The notes under the pieces were generated by a model. It saw only the letters and a program-made list of their open reading frames with translations, did no database searches and was not told the DNA's origin. A stretch of 64,000 nt of DNA from Vitrella brassicaformis CCMP3155 (taxonomy: Eukaryota > Protista > Chromerida), in the NCBI GenBank assembly GCA_001179505.1, contig CDMY01000562.1, forward strand, positions 1 to 64,000. Direction: 5' to 3'. Shown here one piece after another: positions 49,003 to 62,500 of this stretch. The position numbers and the translations under genes are program-made. Position 1 is the first letter of the stretch; each line of letters begins with the position of its first letter.

Positions 49003-51219
49003 CTATGCCGCAGCCGACGCCACGGCGGCCGTCGCCTCCCTGTCCACGCCTTCTTCGCCACACCTGACGTCGCCATACATACTCTCCGTCCTCGGCCGGG
49101 GATAGCCCAGCTGTTCCTTGAGACACCTCTCCACCTCCCCCAGCACAGCGGGGTCGTCAATGGTGGGCGGCACGGGACGCTCGCGCCCGTCGGCTATGGC
49201 TGCGATGGTGCGGCGGAGGATCTTGCCCGAGCGGGTCTTGGGCAGCCGCTCGACGATGCCGCAGTTTTTGAAGAAGGCCACGGGGCCGATCGACTCGCGC
49301 ACCGCCGCGATGATCTCGCGGATGACCTGGTCGGGGTGCGAGGCTCGCTCGGGCTTGAGTACTACGAGGCCGAGAGGGATCTGCCCCCTGAGGTCGTCGT
49401 GTATGCCGACGACGGCGCCCTCCGACACGGCGGGGTGCTGGACGAGGACGTCTTCGATGGCCGCGGTGCTGAGTCGGTGTGCGGCGACGTTGATGACGTC
49501 GTCGGTCCGCGACATGATGTGGACGTACCGCTCCTCGTCGATGAAGCCGCTGTCGCCCGTCTCGTAGTAACCCTCGTAGCGGCTCATGTAAGAGCTCAAG
49601 AACCTATAAGGGGAAAGAAGGTCCATTCTCTATATGTGTGTGTGTGTGTGTGTGTGTTTGTGTGTTTGGTGGTGGGCTGACCGTTTCTCGTTATTCCATA
49701 GCGTAAGCAGGGTGCCTGGTGGGAGGGGCAGCTTGCAGACGACGCGGCCCATCTCGCCCGGCTCGGCCTCGATGCCGTCGTCACGGAGAATGCGCAAGTC
49801 ATACCCAACGCCGGGGTGACCACACGAGCCCGCCCTGCACAATACACACACGCAGTGATGTGATGGGAGGGAGAGAGAGAGAGAGAGTGGTCGATGGGAT
49901 GCATGGATGCGATGCGTGTGGTTCGTTCAAGTGCCGGGCCGTGTGTCGTGTCACTCACCTGGGAGGAATGTCATTGTTGTCGAGTCCCCTGCAGATGATG
50001 GCCATAGGGAAGCCGGTCTCAGTCTGCCACCAGTTGTCGACCACCGCACACCCCAGGAGGTCGCGCGCCCAATCGAACGTCGGCGGGTCCAGCCGCTCGC
50101 CAGCCACAAACAACGTCTGTATGGCATTCAATGACGGACGCTCGAGTGAATGCTCTTGGCAGACAGACAGCCATGCAGCCAGGCAGCCAAAGGGACCTTA
50201 GTACTGACCGACCTGAAATTGGTCCATCTTGGGTTTGTAGTGTTTGATGTACTCGCCATTGGGGTCGTCCCGCCGCATCACGCGCAACGCCGTCGGCGCG
50301 ATGAACAGCGCCTTGGTGTTGGTCTCGCTTACCACACGCCATATCGACCCTGACCGATAGACCAACCAAACACAGACACAACTCCATCAGCGCGTGTGCG
50401 CGTGTGCGTGTGAGGTGCCGACTGACTGACTGACCAGGGTTAGGCGTCCCGACAGGTTTGCCCTCGTACATGACGGTGGCGCATCCGGCGAGGAGCGGCG
50501 AGTAGACCATGCACGTGTGCCCCACAATCCAGCCGACGTCGGAGGCGCCGAAGAAGGTCTCCCCGGGGTTGATGCCGTAGCACGTCGGCATGGCGAACTT
50601 GCCGCTCACGATCTGACCCGCATGGTCTCGCACGACGCCCTTTGGCTGACCTGCCATGCCGAGACACATACAGACACACACACACACACACACAGAGGGG
50701 TAACTAACTAGGTGCTTGTGTGCAGAGGGGGATGTGTGGCTTGGTGTGAGTGATGGGGGGGGTAAACGATGCGCACCTACCTGTCGTGCCAGAGGTGTAG
50801 AGGATGTAGAGTGGGTGGTTGGAGGTGACGGGGACGGCGTCGACCGGCTGGGCGGAGAAGAGGTCCTCCCACAGCATGTCCAGGGGGGTCAGAGACGCCT
50901 CACACTACACACACACACACACGCACACACAAGGCAATCAGTCGACACATACACACATCCCACACACACCCACGGGTCTGCGTCTGCCTGCCTGCCCGTG
51001 TGTGTGTGGTGTGTGGACTTCACAACGGATGCCGACCTGCGGCCTCTGCAGGATGACGCATTTGTGGGGCTCGTGTGTGGCCATGGCCAGCCCGCCGTCC
51101 AGCAGCGGCTTGTACGCCACCACCTTCTGAGCCTCAATCCCACACGACGCAGCCAAAATCACCTAAACACACCCACTCACACACACACACATAGACACAT
51201 ACACACAGCACACACACAC

Positions 51220-51261
<42 letters not shown>

Positions 51262-52601
51262 GAGGGAGGGAGAAGCCTACACACCTTTGGCTGCGAGTCG
51301 TTTATGCGTGTGGCGAGTTCCTTAGCGCCAAATCCCCCAAAGACGACTGAGTGGATGGCCCCGATGCGGGCACAGGCGAGCATGGCGACCATGGTCTCCA
51401 CCATCACAGGCATGTATATCAACACCCGGTCGCCCGCCGCCACGCCAAGCTTCCGCAGCCCCCCGGCCACCGTCGCCACCTGCATGCCTCGGCGTGGCAT
51501 GTCGGCACATTCGAGACGAGAGAGAGAGATGTGGTGTGGTGTGGTGGTTTGTTTCGTGCCTTGCCTTGCCTTGCCTGTTCGAGTAGCTGTGCGTATGTGT
51601 AATGCTTCTTGGTGTTGGTGACCGGGGAGTCGTAGTAGACGGCAACACGGCTGCCGTGGCCGGCCTCCACGTGGACGTCCAGGGCGTCGTAGCAGCAGTT
51701 GACCTGACAGATAGATAGACAGACATGATAGGATAGACAGACACACCATACATACCATCGATGGATGAGCAATGAGAAAACAGAGAAATAAGAACCACCC
51801 ATGGCATGCCATGCCATGCCATGGGTGTACGGTGCGCATGGCATGTGATGTGATGTGCCTGTCCTGTGCGTGTCTGTGTGGGGTGTGGGGTGTGTGTGTG
51901 TGGGGTTTGTGTGGTGCTTTGCCTTGCCTTGCCTTCTTGTTCACTCACTGACTCACTGACTGACTGACTGACCATTCCGCCGGTATACCACTTGTAGATA
52001 TGTTCGCTGCCCCGCGAGTCGTCCAGCACCTTGTCATACCTCTTGAACCTGCACACACACACACACACACACACAGACACACCAGAAACCACATCAACAG
52101 CACAGCACAGCACAGCCGTTCGTTCTGATGATCCATAAGAGAGAGACCAGACCCATGCATTCGCTCGTCCATTCACTCACTCAACTCACTCACCAGTGCG
52201 CCCTCTCTCCCTGCTCCCTCCTGCACACATAGATCACATAGCAAACAAGCAGACACACCACACGGACTCCTGCTTCGCTTCGCTTCGCTTTGCTTCGCTT
52301 CGCTTCGCTTCGCTTCGCTTTGCGTCACTCTCTCTCACCAGAAGTCAACTTGGTGTCTGACGGACTTGTCGTGCATGGCGTGCTGCGTGTAGATGAATGA
52401 CCGGGGGGACTCAGCCATGACCCTCGCTGAAGAAGAGGCCGCCCGTTGCTGCTGCTGCTGATGATGCTGCTGCTGCTGCTGACGAGCCATCACATGCACA
52501 TGACGAACCAGACGAGCAGAGAGGGGCGCGAGCGTCCTCGTGGCGGCGGTGAGAGTGTTGTGTGGCGGCCGCAGAGGCAGCTTATTCGCCAGATACCCCA
52601 T
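49003..52601 (-). CDS. Propionyl-/acetyl-CoA synthetase (PrpE/ACSS3-like), mitochondrial-type leader
   Basis: VNCCYDALDVHV, GDRVLIYMPV, RIGAIHSVVFGGF, PLYILYTSGTT|GQPKGVVRD, ASDVGWIVGH, YEGKPVGTP, AGERLDP, DNWWQTETG, YYETGDSG, RTDDVINVAAHRLS and LPKTRSGKILR. N-terminal MGYLANKLPLRPPH...RLVRH. Confidence 0.93.
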
Positions 52602-53095
52602 ACCGTGACTCAGAGCAGCAAACCAGTCAACTCCGTCAATATCTCGTGTGCTCTGTTGCTGATTTGGTGCTGTTGGTGCGGGCGATGACGTAACTTGGCG
52701 CAACCCTGCGGGATCTCACTATCTCAAAACACCTCTCCGCTGCACGCTTAGCTTCCGACCGCCCGTTTGGAATGCATTCCCTCTTGTCCGATGCAATACC
52801 ATTCACACACACAAGGGGCCGGGCCCTGTTCGCTGCCACCACTGCAGTCAGTCAGTCTGTCGGTCAGTCTGTCCATCCACCCATCCATCCATCCATCCGT
52901 CTATCAGCGATTCGACACCTCCCTCCCTCCCTCGTGCGTGCGTGCAGGCAGGCAGGCGGGCAGTCCTCTATGTAGCTAGCTAATAACACACGTACTGTAT
53001 GGACTGTTCTGTTCTGCACTGTACCCAACACACACGTGTGGTGTGCATCTGTCGGTCTGTCTGTCTGTCTGTCTGCAGCGCAGCACTGCTGGTGG

Positions 53096-54110
53096 TCACT
53101 CGGCCCTCCCCGTGCCCCTCCGGTCACCGCAACGGTCGCGCACCGCAGGGGCGCCGCGGTCGTCATCGTCATCGTCATCATCGTCTCCTGCGTCTGGAGC
53201 GTCCTCCAGTGGGCGGAGTGGCGGTGGCGGTGACCCGCCGCGGCCCGGGGATGAGCGGCTGGCGAAGGCCGGGGGCACCCCGAGCTCCTTGAAGGCCTGC
53301 ACGCCGAACTTGGCCACCTGCTGCTCGCTGGATGATCGACAGAGAGGGATGGAGAGGGACGGAGAGTGTGTGTGCTTTGGTTTGGCTTGGTTTGGCTTGG
53401 TTTGGCTTGGTTTGTTGGTGTGACTGACTGAGTGCATTACCTGGTGTTTTCGATGGCGAAGATGCCGTGGTTGGGGACCATGCAGGTGTCACCTGGATGT
53501 GACATGATGGGATGGAACAGACAGACAGACAGACAGAGAAGAAGGATGTGCAGTTCACAGCAGATCACACACGCCGGCTGTCCGCCCCGCCCCGCCCCGC
53601 CCACCTTTCTTGAGCAGGTCGGTATCCCACCCGCCGCCGGCCTTCCGCATGCGAAACACCACCTTGTCCTCCTCGCCCCTGTTGACGTGAAAGGTCTGCA
53701 CACACACACACACACACACACACGCTCGTGTTCAGCTGGTTGGCTGGCTGGCTGTGCGTCCGTGTGTGTGTGTAGGTGACTGACCATGGTGCCCATGTCG
53801 CTCCGCTGCGGCGGCTTCTTGGCCCCGGGCTGGAGCTGCACGAAACACAGATGGGAACAAGAGAGAGAGGAACACACAGATAGACAGACGAGTGAGTGGA
53901 TGGATGGATGGAGTGTGTTGGCTGGCTCTCTCTTTCTGTTGCTCGGCCGTGAGTGGGCATGGCATCTTCATCTTTGTGGGTCTGGTCTGCTTCATACCTA
54001 CCGTGACAATGGATGCGAAGAAATGGGGGTTGTCGTCAAACACCCGCACTGCACACACGACACACGGGAGGGAGGCATAGCATACACAAATGTCACATGC
54101 TTATTGCTCG

Positions 54111-54141
<31 letters not shown>

Positions 54142-55739
54142 GCCCGTGTCGGTCTGTCTTCAATTCCATAGCTCATTCATTCATTCATTCACCGACCGAC
54201 AGACATGCCCTCGACGTCTGTGTTCCATCGGCCGTCCTGCCGCCCCTCCACGTTCCGCCTCTCCAACTCACGCATCAGACCGCCACCGCTCACTATCCCA
54301 CCGCCTGCAATACAATACAATACAATACAATACAATGCAATACACCAACGAATACTGCCCCCCTGCCAGAGACGCCACGCTTCTCCCTGCCTGCCTGCCT
54401 TGCCTGCCTGACCTTCAGGGTTCATCCGGACGAATCTGGCTGGCGCCGCGCCCTTATTCATGAAGTCGCTCGTAACGCTCCACCGGCCGCCACGGTCCAC
54501 CCCGCCCCCCGCACCCACACCCACCCCCGCCGCTCCCCCTCTCCCTTCCTCCTCCTCCTCATCCACCATGGGGCCGGGCGGCTGCGGCTCGTTGGAGGGC
54601 ACCAGGTCCATCGCACCGCCTGCCCGCCCACCCACACCCGCACCCGCTCCCGCCTTCTCACTGCTGTCGCGCTCGTCCTCGACGCGCCGCTGCTGCCCGC
54701 CACGCCTGTCGGGCGGGTGTTGGTCCGCCTTGTCTTTGGCGGGTCGGCCGCGTGCTTTGGCCTTGGGCTTGGGTTTTGGCTTTGGTTTGGCTTTGGGCAG
54801 GCCCATTCGCGGGGCGGGCCGGGGCGGGGGGGACTCGTACTCGTCTCCCTCCTCCTCTTCTTGATCTTCCTCCTCTTGGTCTTGGTCTTCCTCCTCGGCC
54901 TCGTCTTGGTCCTCGTCCATATCTGGTTCGTCGCGCGGCTCCTCCTTGGTGCGACGCGGGGGCGGCTCGCGGTAGTCCTCATCGTCGTCAAGCCCACTCG
55001 ACGCTGAACACACATAGACAGACGGAGGCACACATGCCGACATCGTATCCACCACACACAGCACAGCACAGCAAGTGTGTCGGGCGGTCTGTCTGTCTGC
55101 CTCACCCGACGAAGAGCGTCCTCTGTTGGCCGGTTTCTTCTTCGCCTTGGCCTTGGCCTTGCCCTTAGCCGCACCACCAGCCCCCTTCCCCTTGCTCTTA
55201 GCCGTACCACCACCACCACCGGAGACCGCCACGCCGCTCTTGCCCCTCCCCCGCCCTCCCCTCCCCCTCCCCCTCCCAGCGCCCCGCCTCGCCAAACTCG
55301 TCGTAGCCATGCGCTCGGGCGACCGGGGAGAGCTGCCACGGCCACGGGCGCCGGCACCCCGACCCCTCGCCACACTGCGGCCACGACCACCGCCCCTGCC
55401 CTTGGCCTTGGCCTTGGCACGTGACTTGGCCACCCCGCCCTCATCCTCCTCGTCACGGTCCTCGGCAGATGCGCTCTCGTCCCTGGCGGCTCGGCCACGG
55501 GAGCGGCGGGAGCGGCGCGACTCCTCGCTCTCGTTTTCGTGGATGGGAGTGAGTGCGGGGTCGGCCTTTTGCTTCTGTTTCTTCTTGGGCTGGGCCTTGG
55601 GTGCGCCGACGCGGGCACGGCGGTCTGCATCGGGCTGGTCGTCGCTGTCGGTGCTGTGGCCGCGCTTCCGCTGGGCGGGGGGCACTGCGCCGCGGGCAGC
55701 GGTGGGTGCAGTGGTGTTCTTGATGCGACTGCCCTTCAT
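53096..55739 (-). CDS. Putative CENP-C/Mif2-like protein: long basic/acidic disordered region, AT-hook and C-terminal cupin
   Basis: Six spliced exons give ...RMNPE|VRVFDDNPHFFASIVT|LQPGAKKPPQRSDMGTM|TFHVNRGEEDKVVFRMRK...LLKK|GDTCMVPNHGIFAIENT|SEQQVAKFGVQ, resembling the CENP-C_C cupin. AT-hook-like KARGRPAK. An extra 5' exon is possible. Confidence 0.65.
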
Positions 55740-56274
55740 CGAACTAGAACTAACACAGAGAGGGAGGGGATTGCTGCTGGTGCCTAGGGGGTGGGGAGCG
55801 AGGTCCGGACGGAAGCAGAGAGACCTGCGGACAAAGATATGCAGCACACACAGGGATGACGTCCGTCCGTCCGTCAGCTGGCATCCCCCCCGTGAGGTGA
55901 ATGCTTTCTGACCGACCTGGTTTCTGGGTAAGCAAAGGAAACGCCGAGACGGTCAAGGCGTCTTCAGCACAACCACGCTAGAGCACGTCCCTCAGGAGGG
56001 GATGCACTCCACCAGGCACGGATACGATAGATAAGCCTTCAGCTCGACAACACACGGCTTCATCTCACGCCGCACTCATGCCTACGCCACCATTCCTCCC
56101 GTGCATCCGACGGCGAGCAGTTTCACGGAATTTCCAAGCTCGCATTTTTCGATGCTGCTCCTGAAACCGGTGCTGCTGTCGGAACGGGAAGATGAAGAAA
56201 GCAAGAAATACCGCCAACTTCCATTGACAAGTCCCTGAAGGCCGCCCAAAGTTCCTTTTTTTTTCGTCGAATCG

Positions 56275-57376
56275 ATGGTGACGCTTGATGGTTCAAGAGC
56301 GCGTGGCAGCTCTCGGCGGTCCGGGAGGCGGCAGTACGAGCGGCTCCTGCCGCCGCTGGTGCTGGTGCTGGGGCTGCTGCCGTGCGTCGTCGGGGTGCGG
56401 ACAGAAAGAAAACCACAATGACTGCCGCAATGGCAAGGACTGACTGACCTGATGATTTGTTCTTTCTGTGCTGTTGTTGTATGTGTGCAGGATTATGGCA
56501 ACTTGTGTCGGTGCATCTGTGACGGCCTCAGTGCCAATCTGACGGTGACACACACAAGACAGACAGACAGACGGACGGACAAAGGGGAACGCACACACTG
56601 TCAGGCAGGCAGGCAGTGTGAGTGCGTGTGATTGCGGGACGTGTGTGGTGTGTGGGTGGGTTGGTGGGTTGGTGTGTTGTTTGTGTTAGGTGGTGATACC
56701 ATCGATGACGGGTTGCAAGGAGTGCAACAGCGCCATGTGCATATCCCACTTCCCCGAAGACTGTGTCCAGGGCACTACCATCAACGCACACTGCATCAGT
56801 AAGTCAGTCAGGCAGTCAGTAAGGGAGGGAGGGAAAGATCTCGATGACCAGCTTTAGCTTAGCTTACTCAGCCGGCCATCCATCCATCCATCCATGTGTG
56901 GTGTGTATGGTGTGTTTGGTTGGTGTGGTGTGTGCTTTGTCGTCTTGTCCGTCCGTCCGCAGATCGTCATGCGTGGATGCCGCGGCTGGTCATAACCTCC
57001 ATGTTCGCCACCATTGGCCTCCTCATCATTCTCGGTCAGTCAGTCAGCCAGTCACCTTTAAAGCCATTAGTTAGATCCATCACCACAACCAACCAACCAA
57101 CCAGCCAACTCCCTCCCTCCCTCCCTCCCTCCTCAATCCATTCATCCATCCGTTCGGCTGTCCCTTTATCTATCTCATATATCAGGTCTGGCCAAGCACT
57201 ACATCCCCTCCCTCGGCCCCGCTCTTAGGATAGAGCACAACCGTGGTCGGACGGAGAGCCAGGAGTTCACCGTGGGCACCCCTGCCGCATCCACTGCCGC
57301 GACTGCAGCAACGGGGAGGACAGCGGGGCCGCCGCCGGACGTGGGGGTGGGGGGGAGGAAGGTCTCACCCACATGA
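56275..57376 (+). CDS. Small Cys-rich single-pass membrane protein (5 exons)
   Basis: MVTLDG...LLPPLVLVLGLLPCVVG|DYGNLCRCICDGLSANLT|VVIPSMTGCKECNSAMCISHFPEDCVQGTTINAHCI|NRHAWMPRLVITSMFATIGLLIILG|LAKHYIP...KVSPT*. All intron phases are compatible. Confidence 0.75.
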
Positions 57377-58143
57377 CAGACAGACATGAGTGAGTGAGAT
57401 CCGCTTGTGGGGTGGTGGGCCGGCTTCCTCTCTCTGGCGAGCTGCAGGAGGGAACAAGGGCGCGAGGGAGAGTTTTCTCGTCTGGTGGTGGCGGTGTGTG
57501 GCGGGGTGTCCTGCCTGCCTCAGCCAGCCAGCCGTTCTTACACACTGGTGTCGACAGCGTGGCTGCTTTGCCTTACTGGTTGACACGGTTGTACAGACAG
57601 TCTTACTGACTTGTCCATTCTGCGTGCGTGAGTTCGTGTGTGACATGGTATTCATTACACTGACATGACGTGACATAAACACTTTATCGCTCTAGGGGGC
57701 GAGTGTGCGGGTTTCATTTCTTGTACCCCTCAAGAAGACCTCCATCGCCAGGATCGAGGCACCTAAACAAAAACTGAGCTCTTCAATTGAATGCACCTGC
57801 ACACACACACACACACACGCAGAGGGGTGCCGTGCCGTGCCGTGGACATTCAGATGCGAAAACATCCGCACAGCATGTGTGTATAGATGGATTGACTGAT
57901 TCAGACACAATGGATGGCTTCAATGCATTGGTCCCTGCCTGCAGCACAGACAGCATGCAGACAGACCAGACATGTTTTCAACAAACAACACGGAGTCCGT
58001 CCCTCCGTCCATCTATGCGATGCGAGGGAAGCATCCACGTCTCCCGCACCCCGTCCAATCCACCAAACATAACATGCATAACCGGCCACACGAAGGAAGA
58101 CATGCTCACTACATGGACATCGGTCTGTCTGTCTGTCTGTCTG

Positions 58144-59444
58144 TCAGTGAAAGGTCGCCACATAGATGGGCAGATGCGACCCCGCCACGTGCCGCCCGGT
58201 GGTGTCAAAGCCGAGCAGCCCGTCGTGCTCGCAGTTCTTCATCAGCCGCTCGCAGTCCACCCGCACGCCCCTCTCTCTAGTCGACACCTGCGTCGCCACC
58301 CAACACGCTATCTCACGCCGCCTCTCGACCGCTGCACCCATGTGGCTCACAAGCACCGACGTCGACCGAGACACACGCGGCGCCAGCAGCGGGGCCGCCT
58401 TGGCCCTGTGGCACTGGTCGCCCTCGACCACTTCCACAAAGGCTTGTGGGTTGGGGGCGCCGGGGAGCACCTCTAGAAGCAGCGTGCTGCTTAAAGGGTT
58501 GCTCTCGTCCCAGAGCAGCGTGTAGAAGGCCCGTATGACGCGCTTGACCACCTCGGTGCTCTGGATGTGGTACCATTCCGGGTGCGAGAGCACCAGCCGC
58601 AGATGGGAGTCCCCCATGTTCTCGAACTCGCCGAGCGCCTTGAGCACGGCCGCCCTCTCGGCCTCCGGCGGCCGCCGGATGTCCATCGCTTCCATCTGCA
58701 GCTCATTTCTAAGGTGCTGCACGGCCATGTCGTCCGTGCAGTGGTAGAAGCGCCGCCCTAAATGCTCTCTGTGGATCTTGGCGACGAAGTCCTCCAGCAG
58801 CTGGTTGATGCGGCCCTGCCCGAGTGTGTGCTCCGGGACCAATTCTAACAAGGCGTTGAGAACCAGGACGAACTCGCCAAGGTCTCCCCCTGGTGTGCAG
58901 AGGGAGGGGGTCGCCACACGGTCGTCGAGGCACGAAAAGTGCTGGCTCGCCACGGGCATGAGCGAGAGGCCGGTGAAGCGGCCATATGACTCCGACAACT
59001 CCACCATGCTCATTCCCTGGCCGGGGCGGCTCTGGTGTAGCTTGACCTTCGATGGGCTGCAGTGGGTGGTCTGACTGCCGGCGTTGCCGTCGTGGTCGTG
59101 CTGTTTGTCGCTGCAGCTGCACTTGGCGTTGTAATGCCCGCCATTCAGCTCCACAGATCCGGCGAGGTAGTCGGTTTGGTCGGCCAGTTTGACGTGGGAA
59201 TGCACCTGGATCAGGGAGCTGGCGCCCGCCATCTCACCTGACGGGGTGGTCACCTGCACCGCATGCACACATCATCCATCCATCCACCGATCCACCCACA
59301 GCAAAGAGCAGCAGATCATCCATTCATCTCTTCATACCTGGCCTCCCTCTTTCTCACCGTTAATTTGCGCTTCTCGTGGGCGCATACTGCTGGTATGAGT
59401 ATGAGCAAGAACACGACGGTCATCACGCTCAACGGGAAAGCCAT
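58144..59444 (-). CDS. Secreted beta/zeta-class carbonic-anhydrase-like protein (2 exons)
   Basis: Signal MAFPLSVMTVVFLLILIPAVCA. Motifs SCLDDR (CxDxR), TPGGDLGEF, FYHCTD and MGDSH. Intron at about 59257-59356. Confidence 0.6.
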
Positions 59445-59511
59445 TCTTCACTTGCCCTGCCTTCAATTGTAAATTTAATTTGCGAGCTTTTGAGGAAATT
59501 GAGAGTCGGTT

Positions 59512-62500
59512 ATGCGCGCGGCTGTGGTAGTGACGGGAGGCGTTGCCGCAGGTGGGACGGCAATCCTCAGTCGTTTCGAGCTCAGGAAGAACCTCGAGGC
59601 CAACAGCCCGCCGGTGCTGTGCTACCTGAGGACCCACATCAACGAGGCCATCGTCAGTGACACGCCCAGACTCACCAGCCCTTACACACCACCACCATGG
59701 TACTCCCACAACCCTCGCTCATTGACACACAGACAGGAACCAGACCTACCAGACAGGAGAGGAAGAGTAGAGACGAATGGGCGACGCAACGCAACGAGGA
59801 AGGAAGGCCTTCTGTCTGTCTGTCTGTCTGTCTGTCTGTGTCATCCCATGCATCAGGTGTTCGGGCAAGCACACGCAGATTATCGTATGGATGTGAGTGG
59901 CCGGCCAGGGGGGGGGGGGGGAGGNNNNNNNNNNNNNNNNNNNNNNNNNNNNNNNNNNNNNNNNNNNNNNNNNNNNNNNNNNNNNNNNNNNNNNNNNNNN
60001 NNNNNNNNNNNNNNNNNNNNNNNNNNNNNNNNNNNNNNNNNNNNNNNNNNNNNNNNNNNNNNNNNNNNNNNNNNNNNNNNNNNNNNNNNNNNNNNNNNNN
60101 NNNNNNNNNNNNNNNNNNNNNNNNNNNNNNNNNNNNNNNNNNNNNNNNNNNNNNNNNNNNNNNNNNNNNNNNNNNNNNNNNNNNNNNNNNNNNNNNNNNN
60201 NNNNNNNNNNNNNNNNNNNNNNNNGGGGGGGGGGGGGGGGGGAAGGCAAGAGAAGAGAAGGGCAACACACCGCACCGCCCTCGGCATTCAAGGTATTGCG
60301 TGCATGGCATGCTGCCAACAGGTATCGGAACATGTTTTGCGCCAACAAGCCGCTGACGATCCGCAGACAGCTGGTCCCGCACAAGGACGGCGCGCAGACG
60401 GCCCTGGACTGGTATGAGGAGAAGGACCCCCACACTCTGCGGCCGCTGGCGCCCAACGCGCCGGTGGTCATCCTCTGCCACACCATCAACGGCGACAGCG
60501 AGCAGTTCAAGCTCATGGCCTACCACCTGAGGCAGAAACAGGGCTTCCGATGCGTCTGCCATGTCAGAAGGTAGGCGGTGCGCATGGCATGCATTAAGAG
60601 AGGGGAGGGGAGGGGCTCTCTCTGCATTCATTGTGTGGTGCTGTCTGTGTCGTGTGGTGTGGTGTGGTGTGTGCCCTGCAGGGGGTATCACGGCGTGAAG
60701 CTGACTACGGCAGAGTTCGACACGATGGGCTCATACAATGACACCGAGGAGGCCATCGCTGAGGTAGGTCGCAACACTCACACAGCACTCTCACTCACAC
60801 GCCACACGCACAGAGACTGAGATGCCCCATGGGTATGTATCTGTGTGTGTCCTGTCCGCCCACACATGCATGCATCCGTCCGCAGATAGAGCGTCAGTAC
60901 CCGCACGCCCCCGTGCTTCTGGTGGGCATGTCGGCTGGCACCGGGCCTGTGGTGCGCTACCTGGGCATCAGCAGGGACAAGTCGAGGGCGGTGGCAGGTA
61001 GGAAGGAGGGTGGGACATCACATCACCCCTACCGACGGGTGGCTGGGCTGCACTAACCAGGACACATCTATCCATCCATCAGGCTGCCTGATATCACCGG
61101 GGTACGACATCCAGAGGTGTTTCGGAAGGTAAGGTACACACCTACCTAAACCCACCCACACACACACACATCGGCACGCCATGCAAGGGGCAACAATGCT
61201 CATGCGCATGCTCATGCTCATGCTCTCCCTCCCTCCCTGCCCAGGTTTGAGTGGCCGTATGACTGGATCGTCATTCAGCGGCTCCGTGAGTATCTGAAGC
61301 GAAACGCCCGGGAGATCCTGGGGCTGCCCCCTTTGCCAGACGCCGACCAGCCAGGCAGCCACGCCCCCCATCACCATCACCATCACCCCGACCACCACAC
61401 GACGGCCATCACGCCCATCCACCCCGAAGAGGAGAATGCCTCCATTGCACATCCGCCGCTGCTGCGGAACCTGATGCTCAAGCGAGAGCTGGATCGGGGC
61501 AATGGCAATGGCACTGGGGAGAGGGAGAGGGAGAGGGAAAAGGGGGTGGTCATGGGCAAGTTGGAGAGCCTGCGGCGGCGCGTGTATGAGTTCATTCTGA
61601 ATCGCTGTGCAGATCTGCAGGAGGTCGGTGGGAGGAACGGAGACATGCTTTGTGGCATTGTGTATGTGTGATTGTGTGTGTGTGTGTGTGATTGTGTGTG
61701 GTCAGCTGCACGATTCGTTGCATGTGTTTGCGGGTTACACGTCTGCGGAGGACTACTACAGGAACTCCAACCCCATGAACGTCGTGTACGACATATCGGT
61801 GCCCTTCCTCGTGGTCAATAGCCTCGGTCAGTCAGTGCCGTGCCTCAGCCAGCCAGCCAGCCACCCATCCAATACGCACCGATAGACACACTGGACACAC
61901 TGGACGGACGCATGGGTGTGGGTGTGGGTGTGTGTGCTCAGATGACCCCTGCACCATCTCTGCCAATATCGAGTATGAGCTCTTCCGCAAACAGCCTAAT
62001 GCACTCCTGGGTACCCAAATGACACGCCACAGCACAACAGCACTGTTTGTTCTTCACTCACTTGGCTGTTCTTTCCTACCATCCATCAGCTCTGACGAAG
62101 CACGGGAGCCACTGCTGCTTCCTGCAAAGTGAGAACCTACAATGGCGCCCAACAGGCGCCATACATTGCCGGCCGCCATTCTTGTCTCCATCTTTGTGTG
62201 TCCAGAATCCCAGCCGTTGGGCCCGTCGTGGGTTGAGGAGCTCGTAGGCGAGTACTTCTCGTCGGTTCTGTCGCAGCTCAACATCCCCTCCCACCACACG
62301 CAGTCCATCGAGGACCCCATACCCATTCCCACCCCCCCTCCCAGCCCAACAGCGACACCCTCAACCACCACCACCACCACCAACCCGCCCACCTTTCCCC
62401 TTGGCCGCCACCCACACGTGAGCAACATCGACATGGACATGGACATGGCCTCACTCGCCATCCCAGGGCTGGTCAACACCTCAGCTCTCGCGGCCTTCCA

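Follow-up and report, generated by a model that had tools for sequence, protein, structure and literature searches.

The window, by which we mean the whole stretch of 64,000 nucleotides analysed here from the chromerid alga Vitrella brassicaformis CCMP3155, contains an expressed nuclear gene that probably encodes a 601-aa protein of the CENP-C family, with a kinetochore function predicted from the sequence. CENP-C proteins anchor chromosomes to the spindle, and no free-living, photosynthetic organisms are more closely related to the apicomplexan parasites than the chromerids. The gene is real, is spliced as modelled and is expressed. It is a new member of its family, which has been known from the parasite relatives since 2022.

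The gene lies on the minus strand and spans positions 55739-53096 in eight exons, with 1806 coding bases (601 codons) running from an ATG at 55739 to a TGA at 53098-53096. Its seven introns all begin with GT and end with AG, and measure 89-166 nt each. Coding exon 1 (55106-55739), which is covered by RNA contigs, encodes residues 1-211 plus one base and specifies a basic, lysine-rich, predicted disordered segment with the sequence RRSRRSRGR at 55517-55491, RG/RGG tracts at 55400-55239 and KAKAKA at 55166-55134. Coding exon 2 (54413-55003) encodes residues 213-408, including an acidic tract (54932-54834), a PKPK run, an AT-hook-like RGRP (54752-54741) and the stretch KGAAPARFVR (54455-54426). 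Coding exon 3 (54197-54304) supplies residues 410-444, directly N-terminal of a cupin domain which is itself divided among the remaining exons. The cupin begins in exon 4 (54002-54048; VRVFDDNPHFFASIVT) and continues through exon 5 (53785-53835; LQPGAKKPPQRSDMGTM), exon 6 (53605-53695), in which it carries an insertion, KAGGGWDTD, and exon 7 (53441-53492; GDTCMVPNHGIFAIENT). Exon 8 (53096-53327) provides the final strands of the cupin, which end at about 53297, then a proline-rich and poly-aspartate tail and the TGA codon, and is continued by a 3' UTR that is 361 nt or longer (52735-53095).

The original prediction had assembled a spliced protein from five small exons, and these do exist and join in phase in both the gene model and the transcript. 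Its limits were exact for three of them and off by 1-2 bases for the other two, which truly lie at 53695-53605 and 53327-53096. The peptide that it gave was likewise right save for one doubled serine at the junction of exons 7 and 8, which reads ENTSEQQ and not ENTSSEQQ. The list of five was correct as far as it went, but it missed exon 3 (54304-54197) as well as introns 1 and 2, which are hidden within a 552-aa ORF. Both of these introns (55105-55004, 102 nt, and 54412-54305, 108 nt) keep the frame and contain no stop codon, and the ORF therefore seems to read through both. Retention of intron 1 or 2 would add 34 or 36 residues, respectively, and leave the frame intact. Short tandem repeats, namely (CAGA)n, (CCAAG/CCAAA)n, (GT)n and (GTATT)n, fill nearly every intron and are sited at 53360-53420, 53510-53545, 53700-53725, 54110-54150 and 54305-54345; (CAGA)n also recurs across the whole window, where it gives many short blastn matches.

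Splicing was verified against public transcript data. In a transcript contig of 1031 nt (L001), exons 3-8 directly follow the end of exon 2, all contiguous and 100% identical to the genome, after which the contig runs on collinearly through 361 nt of the 3' UTR. Within it, the last 89 nt of exon 2 are followed by exon 3 at positions 90-197, exon 4 at 198-244, exon 5 at 245-295, exon 6 at 296-386, exon 7 at 387-438 and exon 8 at 439-670, while positions 671-1031 are identical to the genomic sequence downstream of the stop codon. The protein encoded by L001, P0001 (222 aa, JGI sample 3300017148), is the spliced C-terminus of the gene model. Contigs from four public runs belonging to three studies were aligned to positions 53000-55900, and as spliced records were found in all four runs, these contigs derive from RNA. 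The exon joints of the gene model, those of exon 3 among them, were confirmed by spliced contigs in the four runs and three studies. At introns 1 and 2 the contig joints showed spliced forms only, and the 102-nt intron 1 was removed in every one of the four runs. One record of 1517 nt (run X8, record 14) aligned in pieces covering the end of exon 2 as well as exons 3, 5, 6 and 8, the piece for exon 5 being exact. The 59 nt between two of its pieces are the remainder of exon 3 plus exon 4, and the 45 nt between two others are exon 7 minus 7 bases of boundary ambiguity.

The RNA contigs also bear on the 5' end of the gene. They are collinear with the genome up to 55827, adjoining an acceptor AG at 55826-55825, and the stretch 3' of this acceptor (55740-55824) belongs to the 5' UTR, within the first coding exon. 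Beyond 55827 the contigs extend by a further 84-185 nt (84 nt in one run and 177-185 nt in each of the other three) with sequence that lies outside 55828-55900. The upstream exon that fits best would be a putative untranslated one, about 185 nt long, at 55917-56101, its upper limit being approximate, with a donor in which CAG is followed by GTCGGT (GT at 55916-55915); this donor hexamer is the same as that of intron 3. The contigs break with a 3-base ambiguity, which a CAG common to the putative donor and acceptor sides would explain. The putative leader exon has an in-frame stop at 55966-55964, 47 nt before the donor, and its three ATGs (56093, 56079 and 56063) open only short upstream ORFs, MVA and MSAA, each followed by a stop, and one of 23 codons. 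Such upstream ORFs hint that translation of the main ORF is regulated. An upstream exon encoding a CENP-C motif, which the original prediction had suggested looking for, was not found: the single upstream exon to which the RNA contigs point is blocked by the in-frame stop, and other in-phase donors yielded only short peptides devoid of the motif. Given this stop and the shortness of the upstream ORFs, the protein most probably starts at the ATG at 55739, with no hidden motif-bearing coding exon upstream.

The cupin domain, which occupies residues 445-535 of the full-length protein (54048-53297, exons 4-8) and is followed by the tail of about 65 residues, identifies the family. Residues 66-156 of P0001 match the Pfam family CENP-C_C (PF11699) over profile positions 4-85 of 85 with an E-value of 5.9e-7 and a score of 30.1 bits against a gathering score of 29, a margin of only 1 bit; P0001 also carries a precomputed PF11699 label in its source database. 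The generic models Cupin_1 (14.3 bits, cut-off 22) and Cupin_2 (12.7 bits, cut-off 27.2) both scored below their cut-offs, about 16 bits behind CENP-C_C. Thus the profile test of the spliced protein, carried out through P0001, was positive, with PF11699 the best profile. When the exons were searched singly against Pfam no match was obtained, the cupin exons encoding only 16-30 residues each and three of them fewer than 20. A sequence search of the PDB (177,635 distinct sequences) with the domain returned two matches only, the cupins of Schizosaccharomyces pombe Cnp3 (6o2d, E 0.0044) and Saccharomyces cerevisiae Mif2 (2vpv, E 0.83), with weak E-values, and the alignments to both are collinear over the barrel and have in common FFAS, PG..K, F.V..G and VP..N..I.N. 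The three nearest clusters in the ESM Atlas are Mif2/CENP-C-like (0.94, 0.91 and 0.91).

An enzymatic or storage cupin of the Cupin_1 or Cupin_2 type was rejected on the basis of these sub-threshold scores and of the metal ligands. The part of the cupin encoded by exon 7 retains the G-x5-P...N skeleton and has no metal-binding histidine, and in the P0001 sequence GDTCMVPNHGIFAIEN a phenylalanine occupies the position of the ligand histidine, motif 1 likewise being devoid of HxH as read from the sequence. It could still be argued that the product is a nuclear protein whose cupin has no functional relation to kinetochores, and that the PF11699 match reflects only general cupin similarity, and the borderline Pfam score, the unreliable structure model and the failure to find relatives would all agree with this. 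We consider it unlikely, however, since CENP-C_C outscores the generic models by the difference given above, the PDB search matched only two CENP-C cupins though many other cupin structures have been deposited, the top three ESM Atlas clusters agree with CENP-C and the enzymatic metal-ligand histidines are absent. An unrelated cupin as the best match, the outcome which had been named as grounds for rejecting the original prediction, was not observed. AlphaFold run on the sequence alone gave a model too poor to rely on (pLDDT 43), and a Foldseek search with it gave no significant match; cupins, including the CENP-C cupins of fly and chicken, ranked high in that search, which was not counted as evidence.

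Searches for relatives were carried out at several levels. HMMER with residues 1-170 of P0001 against 1.84 billion representative proteins recovered P0001 itself and three repeat proteins, and no real relative. These three (P0002-P0004), bacterial-type FG-GAP/beta-propeller repeat proteins with E-values of 1e-4 to 1e-7, were dismissed as artefacts, because their scores sum many repeats that weakly match the same 30-50 query residues; profile matches of this kind, made up of multiple stretches, need checking. A word search with the 516-aa read-through ORF gave no match, and one at the length of the transcript fragment found P0001, the searches covering proteins of 126-903 residues. Metagenome contigs scanned with the DNA pattern of the 5' exon and with P0001 gave no match either, and no second cupin gene or tandem paralogue was present within the window. 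As the only protein bearing this cupin in the word searches (126-903 residues) and the HMMER search was the 222-aa fragment P0001, public gene models of this genome may lack the cupin.

The region in front of the cupin, residues 1 to about 444, is of low complexity and probably disordered, being made up of lysine-rich, RG/RGG and KAKA segments, long acidic tracts, PKPK and a single AT-hook-like RGRP. The K/R/G-rich and acidic tracts with RGRP at 54752-54741 are present as originally described. The architecture, with a long disordered N-terminus, an AT-hook-like core and a cupin near the C-terminus, lends further support to membership of the CENP-C family. The canonical CENP-C motif, R-x-x-x-x-P-x-x-[YW]-W, was sought with regular expressions and found neither in exons 1 and 2 nor in the six frames of 50001-60000, which bears out its absence as noted at the outset. 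Of the claim that the gene encodes a CENP-C/Mif2-like kinetochore protein, the domain family is thus upheld by PF11699 and the PDB matches, but, with the motif absent, assignment as a CENP-C orthologue is not. About 40 residues N-terminal of the cupin there is a loosely motif-like stretch, KGAAPARFVR (54455-54426, residues 395-404). The core of the CENP-C motif is P-x-x-Y-W-R, in which the arginine spacing and the tryptophan are functionally critical (PMC4830207); KGAAPARFVR has the order P-x-x-aromatic-hydrophobic-R as in that core, without the tryptophan and without the correct arginine spacing, and the pattern, defined post hoc, occurs in 2% of shuffles. As a CENP-A-binding element, KGAAPARFVR is a lead only.

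If that lead held, the gene could be CENP-C proper, with a CENP-A-binding element that has degenerated or moved. We regard this as possible but rather doubtful. P-x-x-F-V-R resembles P-x-x-Y-W-R and has a basic residue four positions upstream, and it lies within the 100 or so residues before the cupin, where the vertebrate motifs sit. Against this, the pattern was set after the sequence had been seen and is matched by shuffled sequences at the frequency just given, and the two features known to be critical, the arginine spacing and the tryptophan, are not kept.

The other reading of a CENP-C-type cupin without the motif comes from the sister lineages. Using iterative HMMs on 90 alveolate proteomes and transcriptomes, Brusini et al. 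2022 (PMC9418836) described CENP-C homologues with a cupin from Apicomplexa and dinoflagellates, of which CENP-C (and SEA1) have the CENP-A-binding motif and AKiT9 and AKiT10 do not. They recognised two old lineages in Myzozoa, a motif-bearing CENP-C and a motif-less AKiT9. In the sister lineages, cupin proteins of the CENP-C family, motif-less paralogues included, have an established place in the kinetochore (PMC9418836). Their species list was taken from Koreny et al. 2021, whose data set had Vitrella and Chromera. No paper found by our literature search names a chromerid CENP-C. It is quite possible, if short of probable, that the alga gene is an orthologue of AKiT9 and that a separate, motif-bearing CENP-C gene lies elsewhere in the genome: a CENP-C-type cupin without the CENP-C motif is what defines AKiT9 in PMC9418836. 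On the other hand, no second cupin gene was found in the window, which was the only part of the genome searched for one, and loss of the motif occurs within the CENP-C lineage too, AKiT10 being an example. On balance, an AKiT9-type and a CENP-C-proper lineage appear about equally likely for this gene. Because the CENP-C motif is absent and a motif-less AKiT9 lineage exists in Myzozoa, we have filed the gene as CENP-C-family (PF11699) and not as a CENP-C orthologue.

Comparison with the characterised proteins is in keeping with membership of the CENP-C family as judged by the domain. With Mif2, Cnp3 and CENP-C the alga protein shares a cupin near the C-terminus that exceeds the PF11699 gathering score over nearly the whole profile, the pattern FFAS...PG..K....S...M.F.V..G...G....VP..N...I.N, and a long disordered N-terminus, with an AT-hook-like RGRP as in Mif2. 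It differs from them in having no R-x-x-x-x-P-x-x-[YW]-W, in its N-terminal RG/RGG tracts and in its proline-rich and poly-aspartate tail of about 65 residues downstream of the cupin; and it differs from Cnp3 and Mif2 in the KAGGGWDTD insertion in exon 6, of about 8-12 residues. The myzozoan lineage and the CENP-C-type cupin are shared with AKiT9, AKiT10 and SEA1 (PMC9418836), and with AKiT9 and AKiT10 also the absence of the CENP-A-binding motif. AKiT10 has in addition been described as having an AT-hook (bioRxiv version of Brusini et al.), whereas the coccidian AKiT9 proteins are much shorter than that of the alga (PMC9418836). KiTT8/CENP-C of Tetrahymena (bioRxiv 10.1101/2025.11.28.691167) is similarly an alveolate CENP-C that is recognised only by a divergent C-terminal cupin. 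Unlike the alga protein, however, in which no such motif was found, KiTT8 has kept a CENP-C-like motif, and it also has a putative MIS12-binding motif.

If it behaves like those of Mif2, Cnp3 and CENP-C, the cupin of the alga protein would dimerise, its partner being a second copy of itself or, as has been proposed for AKiT9 and AKiT10, a paralogous cupin. Basic tracts and AT-hook would then keep this dimer bound to the DNA or nucleosomes of the centromere, and the protein would sit in the centromere-proximal layer of the kinetochore. Since the canonical CENP-A-binding motif is absent, direct recognition of CenH3 may be divergent, being achieved in a different way, or may be left to a partner. 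It is also conceivable, though improbable in our view, that this is the sole CENP-C-family gene of the alga and that it recognises centromeric chromatin through the AT-hook, the RG/RGG tracts and the degenerate P-x-x-F-V-R near the cupin, without the canonical motif and its arginine anchor and tryptophan. Were that so, Vitrella would offer a free-living photosynthetic model for the way in which the motif-less apicomplexan inner kinetochore (AKiT9 and AKiT10) contacts chromatin.

The suggestion that the gene might bridge to apicomplexan kinetochores has been largely overtaken, as the cupin proteins CENP-C, AKiT9, AKiT10 and SEA1 were described from Apicomplexa and dinoflagellates in 2022, and the picture of myzozoan kinetochores drawn in that year is unchanged by the alga gene. 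The gene does mark a probable gap in public gene models. With its gene model verified, it provides a short-branch chromerid sequence which can help to root the duplication that gave rise to CENP-C and AKiT9, and which can help to date the loss of the CENP-A-binding motif.
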